A DNA stretch of 63,846 nt, the filler included, from Calcarisporiella thermophila CBS 279.70 (Eukaryota > Fungi > Calcarisporiellomycota), in assembly GCF_041956535.1 (NCBI RefSeq). It is 7 parts of 7 records of this genome, joined end to end, with 100 filler letters (N's around TTAATTAATTAA, not from the genome) between each part and the next. Parts side by side here need not be neighbours in the genome. Positions count along the whole stretch, not along the records: positions 3,078 to 30,407 come from NW_027192219.1; 6 more parts are not named here. The stretch is one strand, 5' to 3'. The position numbers were made by a program, and so were the translations under genes. Shown here one piece after another: positions 3,251 to 16,817 of this stretch. The notes below the pieces were generated by a model. The model was not told where the DNA came from, did no database searches, and saw only the letters and a list, made by a program, of their open reading frames with translations. Numbering within the stretch: the stretch's first letter is position 1; every line of letters begins with the position of its first letter.

Positions 3251-3323
3251 GCCCGGCTAGCTCAATCGGTAGAGCGTGAGACTCTTAATCTCAAGGTTGT
3301 GGGTTCGACCCCCACGTTGGGCG
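3251..3323 (+). tRNA. tRNA-Lys(CTT)
   Basis: Cloverleaf GCCCGGC...GTTGGGC-G; anticodon loop CT-CTT-AA; T-loop GGTTCGACCCC; downstream T-run (Pol III terminator). Confidence 0.97.
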
Positions 3324-3957
3324 CTTTTTTATATTTCTCTAGACATTCAAAGATCTTAGTCTTACATCTAGTTTTGACTGTTCATACACAGCTTGAGAAT
3401 GATGGCAATTTTGAGATGTAATTTTGAATTGTCTAGGATTACGTATATCATTTATCTACATACAAATCCAAATCCCCCGCACCCAGTTTTCTGTGCAATT
3501 TTATTATACATGTTTATGGAGATGCTGTCGGTTGTAAAAATGATGTATTGACTGCTTTTGTAGATAATAGCGCTTTAGTCTTATATCAACTGGGGAATTC
3601 TTGCCTTCTAATTTTCTTGTAATTATGGGAGCTACATTAATGTCCTTTTTTTTAAGGCGTGAAGTTATCACGGTGGAGGTGGAATAGATTGGTGAAGTTC
3701 TTCTTTTTCATATCAGGTGGAGTTACCCATGATAATTATTTGTTATTTATCCTTCCATTCTGTGTATTTCTCGAACTGAAGTTTTTGTGCAACCGTGAAA
3801 ATCTAGCAGCTATAGGGAAAACAAATCCTTACTTTGACTCTCTCCATTCCATCTCTCGCTGAATTTCTTCCTTAGCTAGCCCCATTCTTTCGCTTAGTTC
3901 TCCCAGCTGCATCATCAACTTAATCCCCTTGTCTTGTTCTCAAGATCTTTCGGTTTA

Positions 3958-14310: not shown

Positions 14311-14383
14311 CGCCCAACGTGGGGGTCGAACCCACAGCCTTGAGATTAAGAGTCTCACGCTCTACCGATTGAGCTAGCCGGGC
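14311..14383 (-). tRNA. tRNA-Lys(CTT), second copy
   Basis: Reverse complement matches 3251-3323 except one variable-loop base (AAGGCTG vs AAGGTTG). Confidence 0.97.
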
Positions 14384-14464
14384 TTATCAAAACTGTTGCG
14401 TCGAATAATAGACTAATAAGGTCTATCCTGACAATCCTCTAGCTATCCAAGCCTCCTTTCCTCC

Positions 14465-14801
14465 GGGGGAGGGTTAGTGTAGTGGACTATCCCTGGGATG
14501 CCGATGAGAACGGCGTGGGTTCGAATCCCACTTCCCCCACCAGCACTTACTCTTAGTTTGTGACTGCTATCCACTTGATCAGAAGTTGAGTCTTGATTAT
14601 TGAAAAGACCGCCCTTACGATAAGTACAAAAGATTACATCGGTTTCACGTACATGCTATACACGACAACTGCGATACACGCATATCGATTGAAAGTCTAT
14701 CGATCAAGGACCTATATCTCGTCATGTTAAGTCCATTGACATTAACTTCATGTAATATATGGAAATTAAATAAAAGTTTCCATTGATTGATCAAAAAAAA
14801 A
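14465..14801 (+). mobile_element. tRNA-derived SINE, family A, full length with poly(A) and TSD
   Basis: A box TAGTGTAGTGG (14475-14485); B box GGTTCGAATCC (14518-14528); acceptor stem GGGGGAG/TTCCCCC + A + CCA (to 14542); AATAAAAG then A11 (14793-14803); direct repeat AAGCCTCCTTTCCTCC at 14449-14464 and 14802-14817. Confidence 0.88.
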
Positions 14802-16817
14802 AAGCCTCCTTTCCTCCTACTGCGCCATAATTCCATATTGTGCCAATTCTCCTCACAACAAAACTACCATTGAAAAAGAATTACTTTAATGCATCATTTC
14901 TGAATTTGAGCCAATTTTTTTTTGGTCCAAAAAAGCGTAACAAGGGCAGGCCATCATATTCTACTTTCCTCTCTTCTCAAAAAAATAGGAAAGGTAAGCA
15001 CACTCTCTGTACACTCCCCAAATTTTGCATGGATTTCTTGTTTCTGAGGACTATAAAGTCACTTAAGAACGAAAAAATATACTTTTTAATAAAGATCCTC
15101 CTCCTAACAAAAAAAAATAACAGGGGTAGACCATGTGTAAAACCTGAGCGATTTTGTTGTAGTAGTCTCTCCACATCTATTAACTACATATTGTTTTCAA
15201 TAAAGTGTTCATATTCGAAAAAAACATCATCCTTGTGTTTTTTCTTTCTTCAAGGTAAACCATTACCTTTTTTTATGGGCAATTCTTGATAATAGACACC
15301 ATTTTTTAACAAGATGGAATGCTTTATATTTTTCAAGCATCATTTACCCTATTTTTTTAGTCTAACCAATATTTAGTACACCAGTATTAATATAAAGTAT
15401 TCCTTAATCCAGATTAACCTAATGGTCCATTCCGTATCATATCAAAAATAACTTGCTTTAATCAATCCTCTTTTTTTACTCCTCTTTTTTATTACATCTA
15501 TCCTCGATCCAGCGCTTCTGGTAATGGCCACGATTTAGATCAGTAAATTTGTTTAACCTCAATTCCACCTTTTCCCTAGAATAGCTTGAATTAAATAGGA
15601 GATCTTCCGGGGATATTATAGCTGGGTCTGGATCCATTCCTTTCCATGGCATCATTTCTCGTATCGACCTTTCCTGGTTTTACTTTATTCCAATGTTGCT
15701 ACATATATATTAATCCGATACTGTGCAATCTTGCCCTATTCAGGATAGACTAGGTGCACCATCAGCAAGATATGCGAGTAGTATTTTCCCTCTTCTGTTA
15801 CTCATGGTTGACGTGAAAATAATGGGAACAAGAGCAATGGTCAAGGAATGGCCCAGGATCACACATAGATGCAACACCCATATTGGTTAATAGCAAAATA
15901 GCGTAATCTCAAAAGGCAAAATCAGTATTTCGGATTTCTAAAAGAGCGACCCGAGTTAAACAGGACCGTCAACATCGCAACCTCATTACGTAGAGTGCGG
16001 AAGAGCGTACTAATGGGTTCTGACAATGCGTAATATCCCAACCGGATATGAAATGTCAACCTCAGTTCTATTATGCTCAAATCAAATTGAAATTGGAGCA
16101 ATTAAACCCCTTAGGGTATGGGCGAGCGAGCGTGCGAGCGCTTGTTCATAGCGGCTTTATCGAGCTATCGGTCCCCAAGCCCATGCCTCTCCATTAGACA
16201 GAGATAGCGAGATATGAGGGAGGGCTCGTTCGCCAGGAGCAATTTCTCCTGCATCCCTGCCAGCAGCGAGGCCAGGGCGGCCTGGGATTGGTTCAGGGCG
16301 TATAGCGGAGAAGACGGGCTGTGATAGGTTCGTGGCGATTTTTAATTCATAGAGTTAAAGCATTATTAATGTTTCAGATAAAGGCGGCCCCGCTCCTATC
16401 TCAGCAGGGAAGAAATAGGAGGCGCGATTGGGAAGAGGGGCTATCATCACTTGACGATAAAAGATCGTGACGCTCCGTCGGAATTCAGACTCAACCGTTG
16501 GTTATGTCTCGATTCTCTATTATTCATGGAAGCCCCGTGACATGGTCTGAGCACGGCAGAGGGTCACAGAATAATTGCATTAGAGGAATCAAGCTCTATT
16601 TACAGTTTACTCTTCTTCAGCTTTTGAACTTGTTCTCTCTCTCCATCTGCGAATTGCAAATAAGGCCAGTCGGTATCCCCATCTCTTCTCTATAAATATT
16701 TTTCATCCTCCCATTTGCATTCTCAGATTTATACTCCCTAATATCTCTGCATCTTATTTATTTCTTATATAATCCTTTCTATATACCTGAAATATACTAC
16801 CATCTTACATCAATAGA

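Follow-up and report, generated by a model that had tools for sequence, protein, structure and literature searches.

SINEs and L1-like LINEs of the fungus Calcarisporiella thermophila insert by position upstream of tRNA genes, pointing away from them

Inserting next to Pol III genes gives retrotransposons of compact genomes the 'safe haven' known from textbooks. UnaSINE1 and UnaL2 form a 'stringent' pair, in which the SINE has a head derived from a tRNA, complete with A and B boxes, then a unique body and the 3' hairpin tail of its partner LINE; to our knowledge, tail-sharing pairs of this kind insert irrespective of Pol III genes. TRE5-A of Dictyostelium discoideum, an L1-type element with APE and RT, integrates 40-54 nt upstream of tRNA genes (PMC5911963). 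NLTR-B of Polysphondylium pallidum is found 39-64 nt and NLTR-A of D. purpureum 2-6 nt upstream of tRNA genes, and since both are independent L1-type lineages, the tRNA-upstream habit evolves repeatedly (PMC5006619, PMC5911963). Ty3 of S. cerevisiae (sigma solo LTRs), Tj1 and Tyl6 are Ty3-type elements located at Pol III start sites (PMC5911963). For TPRT elements, such targeting has so far rested on one amoeba clade, to which the fungus described here adds a second system.

The DNA analyzed, referred to as the window, is a stretch of 63,846 nucleotides (filler included) from the thermophilic fungus Calcarisporiella thermophila CBS 279.70; the locus was read directly from the sequence. The original prediction placed a SINE with A and B boxes, AATAAA, poly(A) and a TSD 81 nt upstream of a tRNA-Lys gene in divergent orientation, with the proximal TSD edge ~65 nt from the tRNA. 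All of these parts were read in the window, and the element belongs to a family that we call SINE-A:

3251..3324, plus strand: second tRNA-Lys(CTT) gene of the window, an unoccupied gene for comparison (ARAGORN; Rfam)
14311..14383, minus strand: tRNA-Lys(CTT) gene, the Pol III target (ARAGORN; Rfam RF00005, 66.4 bits)
14394..14860, no strand assigned: TGTTG...CAACA element, split by SINE-A (direct reading)
14449..14464, plus strand: tRNA-proximal copy of the TSD, 15-16 bp (perfect repeat of 14803-14817)
14465..14802, plus strand: SINE-A copy, made up of a tRNA-like head, a unique body, a tail resembling that of LINE-2 and poly(A) (direct reading and copy search)
14465..14542, plus strand: tRNA-like head of SINE-A, by sequence a putative internal Pol III promoter (fold and tRNA-clan match)
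14475-14485, plus strand: A box of the head (direct reading)
14518-14528, plus strand: B box of the head, perfect, GGTTCGAATCC (direct reading)
14540-14542, plus strand: terminal CCA of the head (direct reading)
14740..14792, plus strand: 3' tail in common with LINE-2 (84% identity over 62 nt, hairpin)
14759-14783, plus strand: hairpin in the tail, followed by TGATTGATC (stem kept by paired changes)
14769-14774, plus strand: AATAAA, in the loop of the tail hairpin (direct reading)
14793..14803, plus strand: poly(A) of SINE-A, 11 A, the final 1-2 ambiguous with the TSD (direct reading)
14803..14817, plus strand: distal copy of the TSD (perfect direct repeat)

The minus-strand tRNA-Lys(CTT) gene has its 5' end at 14383, and the first base of the SINE-A copy, which is 338 bp long and starts with GGGGG, lies 81 nt from it with the two units divergent. 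The TSD is a perfect direct repeat of agcctcctttcctcc at 14450-14464 and 14803-14817 (16 nt counting the preceding A), and the measured distance from the tRNA gene to its proximal edge is 65-66 nt, in agreement with the prediction. Upstream of the second tRNA-Lys gene at 3251..3324, for which 173 nt of upstream sequence are present, no insertion was seen.

The window copy of SINE-A is nested in a solo-LTR-like element at position -10 of the tRNA, which the original prediction had missed. This TGTTG...CAACA element measures 114 bp once SINE-A is subtracted, begins 10 nt from the mature tRNA-Lys 5' end and has a 4-5-bp duplication on its two sides (AAAC/AAAAC; 14389-14393 and 14860-14864). TG...CA termini, a TSD of the 4-6-bp class and a Pol III start-site position, all of them Ty3-like traits, are present, and the element at 14394-14860 is most simply read as an internally deleted solo LTR. 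A version of the repeat of ~460 bp abuts a tRNA-Lys gene at C8:942099, related copies stand between tRNAs and SINE-A at other loci, and related LTR-like ends sit 10-17 nt from other tRNAs. The genome also has RVT_1 matches of the LTR type.

A genome search returned at least 185 candidate copies of SINE-A, 40 of which were scored and showed 94-100% identity. Copies deviate from the majority base by 1.8% on average and differ from each other by 3.1% in pairwise comparison. The head adopts a cloverleaf-like fold (-34 kcal/mol) ending in CCA and matches the tRNA clan over the T arm, acceptor and CCA (E 1.5e-5), a match that falls short of the Rfam threshold. With a tRNA-like head containing A and B boxes, a short non-coding and dispersed sequence, TSDs of its own, an A-rich tail and a LINE-related 3' end, SINE-A has the features of a SINE2-type element, and by sequence it is classed as a young, high-copy, tRNA-derived SINE. 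A scan of metagenomes with the SINE head gave no match. Among 30 copies inspected, 25 have their own TSD of 11-19 bp (mode 16); the TSD sequences are unrelated to each other and enclose the SINE alone, never the tRNA.

The genome is compact (28 Mb). Direct reading covered 20 stretches of 10 kb, ~1% of the genome, and genome-wide counts come from pattern and family searches. A divergent tRNA gene was found 77-98 nt from the head in 19 of the 30 SINE-A copies (94-100% identical), where chance would place one in the same distance range and orientation at no more than ~0.007 of 30 copies. The targeted tRNAs represent 11 identities (Lys, Ala, Gln, Leu, Ser, Thr, Asn, Cys, Arg, His and Asp). For a genome-wide test, a 17-mer from the SINE head was used as an anchor (91 occurrences), and the expected strand was searched for the B-box pattern GGTTCRA at 128-158 nt past the anchor. 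The B box was present at the predicted distance for 38 of the 91 anchors, with ~0.3 expected by chance and none in the reversed-pattern control, showing that the distribution of distance and orientation is not random, as had been predicted. Starting instead from the tRNA genes, the 5' junction of a poly(A) element was detected 60-95 nt upstream in 18 of 32 genes sampled, and in three further genes an assembly gap begins at 76-88 nt. All except two of ~75 element segments upstream of tRNAs are directed away from the tRNA. The position of SINEs and LINEs relative to the tRNA spreads over ~20 nt. Because of the 19 of 30 copies, the 38 of 91 anchors against 0 in the control and the 18 of 32 tRNA genes, the spacing is a genome-wide rule and not a coincidence. 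Both a fixed distance at many tRNA identities and a fixed orientation, the marks of TRE5-like behavior, were thus observed. Taken together, these data confirm that SINE-A and the L1-like LINEs insert ~65-80 bp upstream of tRNA genes, pointing away from them, by position. The claim that the specificity is positional and not sequence-based holds across the 19 copies, the 11 tRNA identities and the unrelated TSDs.

No tRNA gene is adjacent to the remaining 11 of the 30 copies; in seven of these, a contig end, a gap or nesting accounts for the absence. Within ~0.5-1.5 kb of the copies at L003, L007, L019 and L026 no recognizable Pol III gene was seen, and an Rfam search at the tRNA-less copies L003, L004, L007, L012, L019, L022, L024 and L026 revealed no neighboring Pol III gene. 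No SINE-A or LINE match was found near the three good 5S rRNA genes, a result that is neutral on a TFIIIB tether and on type-1 Pol III promoters as targets. At L011, a 20-N scaffold gap has duplicated flanks, so scaffold gaps account for at least part of the N runs next to tRNA genes; most of the long ones we take to be ordinary assembly gaps in repeats.

The same tRNA-upstream site serves at least three families of SINE heads as well as three families of L1-like LINEs. As anticipated, SINEs with different heads occupy it in the same geometry: one at tRNA-Ile (C3:394564), with its head ~85 nt away, and one at tRNA-Asn (C7:829930), 82 nt away with a 16-bp TSD. Successive elements reuse one TSD in arrays, namely SINE-A and LINE-2 at L011 and LINE-1 and LINE-2 at L046, and at a tRNA-Gly locus a 17-mer TSD is present three times. 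The tail of SINE-A is 84% identical to the 3' end of LINE-2 over 62 nt; the hairpin within it is kept via paired changes in the stem and is followed by TGATTGATC. SINE-C and LINE-3 likewise have a common 3' tail and hairpin. LINE-2, which matches in the tail and has the same TSDs and orientation, is probably the predicted L1-like LINE that shares its 3' tail and insertion site with the SINE.

LINE copies range from ~90 nt to >900 nt, with a variable 5' truncation, a common 3' end, poly(A) and TSDs, and at tRNA sites they end at the same TSDs as the SINEs. Variable 5' truncation is typical of LINEs. The C-terminus of ORF2 is present in at least 134 copies in the genome, and profile searches of the genome gave 92 zf-RVT matches (110 candidates) and 86 RVT_1 matches. 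In LINE-2, the ORF2 C-terminus carries zf-RVT, and only zf-RVT and the C-terminus are visible, the long copies lying in assembly gaps. An open frame of 1372 aa at C3:773.7-777.7 kb encodes APE (PF03372), RT (PF00078), zf-RVT (PF13966) and the C-terminus of the family; it represents a sister family, whose C-terminus is 67% identical to that of LINE-2. The RT of a related LINE fragment has human L1 ORF2p as its best solved relative (E 1e-47), compared with E 6e-9 for R2. Scaffold-gap sizes hint that the LINEs may be without ORF1. Exhaustive and word-based protein searches with the ORF2 pieces returned C. thermophila fragments only.

In our reading, SINE-A is probably copied in by LINE TPRT at a fixed site upstream of the tRNA gene, with a LINE protein positioned by the Pol III complex. 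The L1-like LINEs of the same genome would supply the APE endonuclease, the reverse transcriptase and the zf-RVT cysteine motif. Since the hairpin and TGATTGATC tail is common to SINE-A and LINE-2, a SINE RNA made by Pol III would be copyable in trans, the LINE reverse transcriptase probably recognizing the 3' hairpin together with the TGATTGATC and poly(A) that come after it. By analogy to TRE5-A, a LINE-encoded protein most likely binds to the pre-initiation complex of Pol III (TFIIIB/TFIIIC) at the tRNA gene. Two staggered nicks, ~66 nt and ~82 nt upstream of the 5' end of the mature tRNA, would then create the 16-bp TSD, and the 5' end of the inserted element would always come to lie toward the tRNA. 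The standard geometry of TPRT would place the priming nick at the proximal site, in the sense strand of the tRNA. The contact between a LINE protein and the Pol III complex, the assignment of this contact to a particular LINE protein and current activity of the system are what we infer.

Real targeting might also be achieved by reading chromatin or DNA shape near active Pol III genes, such as the first upstream nucleosome's edge or TFIIIB-bent DNA, with no direct contact to TFIIIB, TFIIIC or Pol III. The usual TFIIIB footprint ends short of nick sites at ~66-82 nt, Ty1, which prefers nucleosomal DNA on the upstream side of tRNA genes, offers a loose parallel, and the ~20 nt spread of insertion positions would fit as well. 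The nicks are also farther out than the 40-54 nt of TRE5-A (PMC5911963). We nevertheless regard this explanation as unlikely, since the strict single orientation and the reuse of an identical nick site in arrays fit a protein ruler better, and sites in unrelated sequence, LTR-derived or otherwise, act alike. Another alternative is an endonuclease reading the DNA sequence upstream of tRNA genes, for instance in LTR-derived repeats. LTR-like targets are indeed present in the window and at L004 and L022, and a group of targets of the type cagtcac...actcgagag is formed by L002, L018, L021 and L025; yet no consensus emerges among 25 TSDs, many flanks are unlike any repeat, and where the target is LTR-derived, its spacing from the tRNA is conserved for either orientation of the LTR, which leaves such sequence recognition very improbable.

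Random insertion with survival only where an element is harmless, beside tRNA genes, deserves equally little credence. Strong selection against genic insertions is expected in a compact 28 Mb genome, but selection cannot yield a peak 20 nt wide, a single orientation or identical TSDs in successive elements, and the SINE-A copies are young, only 1.8% off the majority base. Least probable of all is the copying of tRNA-SINE units together by segmental duplication, with the spacing inherited. Clustered tRNA genes, many of them of identical sequence, and paralogous upstream flanks in some cases would be in its favor; the 11 tRNA identities, the differing spacers and TSDs that change from almost every copy to the next argue against it, as do TSDs that bracket the SINE only and leave the tRNA outside.

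C. thermophila offers a second system in which to study what places a LINE ribonucleoprotein on chromatin, and its several LINE families with tail-matched SINEs constitute a natural experiment. SINE RNA has only the 3' hairpin in common with the LINE, so that the site would be chosen by protein in trans; the targeting module would then reside in the LINE protein or proteins, possibly of a single-ORF element, and not in the RNA. Mobilization of Alu needs only ORF2p. Should ORF2p alone suffice for SINE mobilization here too, the tether would differ from the ORF1p-TFIIIB contact of TRE5-A. The same machinery may retrocopy pre-tRNAs beside other tRNA genes, a direct route by which tRNA genes and SINE heads could arise anew; a candidate chimera of a tRNA-Asn retrocopy and LINE-2 lies at a 4.5-kb gap at C7:1153.2-1157.7 kb. 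A position-specific LINE that nicks at a defined site, ~66 nt from a target gene both small and portable, is attractive for the design of programmable insertion tools. For the genome itself, LINE and SINE targeting explains assembly breaks beside tRNA genes, and a consequence for annotation is that many C. thermophila 'uncharacterized proteins' are LINE fragments.

Compared with the known systems, that of C. thermophila resembles TRE5-A most in being a poly(A) non-LTR system in a compact genome, with a fixed upstream distance, the 5' end toward the tRNA and independence of sequence (PMC5911963). It differs in its distance (~65-81 nt versus 40-54 nt), in its host, which is a fungus and not an amoebozoan, and in the tRNA-headed SINEs riding on it, for which we found no counterpart described for TRE5. 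The tether of TRE5-A consists of ORF1p with TFIIIB, and a counterpart in C. thermophila is suggested by analogy. Both NLTR-A and NLTR-B carry an RNase H domain where the C. thermophila LINEs have a zinc finger; they are confined to dictyostelids, insert at other distances and have no described SINE partners. Lying 10-17 nt from tRNAs and flanked by a 4-5-bp duplication, the TG...CA element (14394-14860) and related copies fall into the Ty3 position class (PMC5911963). This likeness is limited to the LTR element, whereas the SINEs and LINEs use TPRT, have 16-bp TSDs and insert at a site ~55-70 nt farther out. Precise tRNA targeting by poly(A) retrotransposons has earlier been described from social amoebae only, and we found no description for fungi or for SINEs. 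We lean toward the view that this is the first non-LTR system outside dictyostelid amoebae, and the first in a fungus, with fixed distance and orientation at Pol III genes, and also the first whose targeting is passed on in trans to tRNA-headed SINEs. SINE-A and LINE-2 are like UnaSINE1 and UnaL2 in the tRNA-derived head, the unique body and the hairpin tail copied from the partner LINE, but the C. thermophila pair also inherits the positional targeting of its LINE.

The window, which encodes ordinary fungal genes, comes from strain CBS 279.70, whose assembly comprises 116 scaffolds and 28.2 Mb; transposons and tRNA genes are not discussed in the paper describing this assembly. One protein encoded in the window matches a Calcarisporiella thermophila protein with 100% identity. 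The original prediction described a SINE divergent from, and 81 nt upstream of, a tRNA-Lys gene. Its anatomy, spacing and orientation proved accurate:

14311-14383, minus strand: tRNA-Lys(CTT) gene (ARAGORN, Rfam)
between the tRNA-Lys(CTT) gene and the next element: 10-nt spacer (base-by-base reading)
14394-14860: TGTTG...CAACA element with a 4-5-bp duplication on both sides (base-by-base reading)
14465-14802: poly(A) retroposon, 338 bp, of the family termed SINE-A, inside the TGTTG...CAACA element (base-by-base reading)
14449/50-14464 and 14803-14817: perfect target-site duplication (TSD) of SINE-A, 15-16 bp (base-by-base reading)

The distance was counted from the first SINE-A base to the 5' end of tRNA-Lys. 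SINE-A begins with a 78-nt tRNA-like head, containing an A box, a perfect B box, a terminal CCA and a cloverleaf-like fold, and ends with a hairpin with AATAAA, followed by TGATTGATC and 11 A. TGTT... ends of LTR-like repeats were found 10-17 nt from the 5' ends of many tRNAs in either orientation, the repeats being flanked by 4-5-bp duplications (for example 14394-14860 and, given as contig:position in the assembly, C8:942099 (locus L039), C5:1174946, C7:1125378 and C23:426958). The window element at -10 and these similar ends look like Ty3-type insertions, or a Ty3-like position class. SINE-A is frequently located inside such repeats, its distance to the tRNA being unchanged. A second tRNA-Lys(CTT) gene in the window (3251-3324) has no insertion in the available 173 nt upstream, and the sequence flanking it shows no relation to the flank of the occupied gene.

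The genome contains at least 185 candidate copies of SINE-A; the 40 scored ones show 94-100% identity, and the 30 that were fetched differ pairwise by 3.1%. An own TSD of 11-19 bp (mode 16) is present in 25 of these 30 copies, and an opposite-strand tRNA gene lies 77-98 nt from the head in 19 (distances were taken to the base aligned with window position 14466, from which 1-2 nt have to be subtracted for an extra 5' G). Since these 19 copies adjoin tRNAs of 11 identities (Lys, Ala, Gln, Leu, Ser, Thr, Asn, Cys, Arg, His and Asp; two with introns) and the TSD sequences are unrelated, the specificity is positional and not sequence-based, as had been proposed. Counts of a B-box pattern (at most 596 in the genome versus 180 for the control) give a chance expectation for the divergent arrangement of about 0.007 of 30 copies. 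Eleven copies lack a tRNA: for three the contig ends there, for three an assembly gap begins 32-235 nt upstream, and one (L024) is positioned behind a LINE, within an array leading to tRNA-Gly; near L003, L007, L019 and L026 (4 of the 30 copies) no Pol III gene was recognisable.

Distance and orientation were also checked genome-wide. Of 91 occurrences of an exact 17-mer of the SINE-A head, 38 have GGTTCRA on the expected strand at a distance of 128-158 nt beyond the 17-mer; with the reversed pattern as control the count was 0, and chance would give about 0.3. Because the GGTTCRA pattern detects approximately two thirds of the true cases in the fetched loci, the real fraction of tRNA-adjoining heads is about 60-65%. 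At C38:117560-117651 a pair of SINE-A heads point towards each other with about 52 nt between them, which leaves no space for a tRNA, and at C41:82075-82112 the head's first 21 nt are repeated in tandem. A weak 5S rRNA match (C5:1186735-1186848, plus strand, 47.8 bits) begins about 9 nt from a SINE-A head (C5:1186706-1186967), and a B box lies in the same region at C5:1186957 (plus strand); contigs carrying the three good 5S genes (two on C31, one on C53) show no SINE-A or LINE matches.

The tRNA genes came from the 63 best matches of an Rfam scan, disregarding repeats, and 20 stretches of 10 kb were fetched, resulting in 32 distinct genes including the window; the letters read cover only about 1% of the genome. 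A poly(A) element has its 5' junction 60-95 nt upstream of 18 of these genes, and an assembly gap begins at 76-88 nt upstream of three more. Four have poly(A) elements further out (217-675 nt); in the sole case examined, tRNA-Thr at C11:40769, a later LTR-type insertion adjoins the tRNA. No element was seen upstream of the remainder. The TSDs span roughly -66 to -82 (starts 60-80, ends 76-95), and all but two of roughly 75 upstream element segments are oriented away from the tRNA. In the Rfam list, tRNA genes are strongly clustered (C8:936-1123 kb, C29:5-151 kb, C10:204-287 kb) and interleaved with LINE/SINE arrays. Many copies are identical (at least 16 tRNA-Lys(CTT)-type matches of one score, 12 tRNA-Asn-type), and some form inverted pairs with identical upstream flanks (C41:103130/104320).

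Several SINE families share the site, as predicted. Besides an 88% variant of SINE-A, these are SINE-B, about 85 nt from tRNA-Ile (C3:394564), and SINE-C, 82 nt from tRNA-Asn (C7:829930; TSD 16 bp), each with an unrelated tRNA-like head. At a site paralogous to the latter, tRNA-Thr(AGT) C11:40769 (L050), the sequence of the SINE-C TSDs is found as an 11-bp tandem duplication (cgacgcaagtg) about 72-93 nt upstream with no insert, which may represent either a footprint or an integration that was aborted. Truncated LINEs, whose 3' parts are coding, occupy the same position with the same TSDs. Lone truncated LINE-2 copies lie 75-80 nt from two tRNA-Lys genes; at tRNA-Lys(TTT) C10:205384, 5'-truncated LINE-1 and LINE-2 are consecutive with the same 15-nt TSD between them, and at tRNA-Thr C17:674111 one TSD is common to SINE-A and a truncated LINE-2. 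Apart from a positioned endonuclease, little would account for such exact reuse of one staggered cut. In arrays SINE-A is usually tRNA-proximal, consistent with SINE-A having been active more recently than the other families; an exception is the tRNA-Gly array, where LINE-2 is proximal. There (L037:4854-5213 / L024, C7:1152557-1158032) three copies of the 17-nt TSD CTGCTACACGTAGAGGG are present: one 68-84 nt upstream of tRNA-Gly(GCC), one following a LINE-2 poly(A) and one following a SINE-A poly(A). The inserted material adjoining the first TSD copy opens with a 17-nt leader, after which come a perfect tRNA-Asn(GTT), a trailer of 67 nt terminating in T7, and A14; beyond these are a 4.5-kb assembly gap and the LINE-2 3' end. 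This material could be a retrocopied pre-tRNA fused to LINE-2 by template switching, comparable to U6-L1 chimeras; in that case, new tRNA genes and new SINE heads could arise in this way.

A LINE sharing the SINE tail was indeed found: over the final 62 nt of SINE-A, identity to the 3' end of LINE-2 is 84%. Both tails form a hairpin with an AATAAA loop followed by the identical TGATTGATC, and paired changes from U-A to C-G between the stems keep the pairing. SINE-C and LINE-3 have a different tail in common. Such sharing is the usual signature of SINEs borrowing the reverse transcriptase of one LINE.

Open frames at the LINE 3' ends encode a zf-RVT cysteine motif and a family-specific C-terminus, which has at least 134 occurrences in the genome (one group 89-100% identical to LINE-2, another about 65-70%). 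The genome contains 92 zf-RVT matches (110 candidates) and 86 RVT_1 matches, including long LINE-style ones. A 1372-aa open frame (C3:773.7-777.7 kb) contains Exo_endo_phos, RVT_1, zf-RVT and the C-terminus in the correct order, and an annotated 579-aa fragment of the LINE group matches human L1 ORF2p with E 1e-47 versus E 6e-9 for R2. Domain order and the L1 match therefore indicate that the LINEs are probably L1-like and APE-type, in agreement with the prediction. Database relatives of the ORF2 pieces are all C. thermophila proteins labelled 'uncharacterized', and dozens of such NCBI models are LINE ORF2 fragments (e.g. VTP21DRAFT_10274, _8845, _9075, _1804). No full-length LINE-2 copy is visible in the assembly. 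Beside several tRNA genes, scaffold gaps of about 3.7-4.9 kb start at the target position, a pattern that assembly breaks caused by young, near-identical LINEs would produce. The apparent full length of 4.4-4.8 kb leaves little room for ORF1, the gap sizes being estimates. Assembly breaks are systematic at these landing pads: L031, L033, L034, L042 and L047 have gaps of 0.4-4.9 kb starting 76-125 nt upstream of tRNAs, immediately before two such gaps stand the initial 12-15 nt of a SINE-A-type head, and a gap of 20 N, its flanks duplicated, is present at L011:1900-1919.

The insertions thus bear hallmarks of target-primed reverse transcription (TPRT), at a fixed position and in a fixed orientation, independent of target sequence and with several RNAs at one site. 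These data support the original interpretation, in which a LINE would be tethered to Pol III complexes and mobilise SINEs. A recognised sequence motif as target is contradicted by the unrelated TSDs, and the data, with single cuts exactly reused and 11 tRNA identities, likewise contradict random insertion with subsequent selection and co-duplication of tRNA-SINE units. The targeting may instead read a chromatin feature. Under Pol III tethering, the transcription complex at the tRNA gene would position the LINE protein. Standard TPRT geometry would then place the priming nick about 66 nt upstream, on the sense strand of the tRNA, with the second nick a further 16 nt away from the gene. As the tail is all that SINE RNA has in common with the LINE, it must be the protein that selects the site.

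In reviews (including PMC5911963) only the dictyostelid TRE5, TRE3, NLTR-A and NLTR-B count as tRNA-gene-aimed non-LTR retrotransposons, the corresponding yeast elements being LTR elements; we found no fungal LINE or SINE with tRNA-gene targeting in the literature searched. The C. thermophila system resembles Dictyostelium TRE5-A in side, orientation and sequence independence, but lies at about 65-81 nt instead of 40-54 nt (PMC5911963), in another host kingdom, and carries SINEs. With its Ty3-type-looking ends at -10 to -17, C. thermophila parallels Dictyostelium and yeast in the stacking of LTR and non-LTR elements at Pol III genes.
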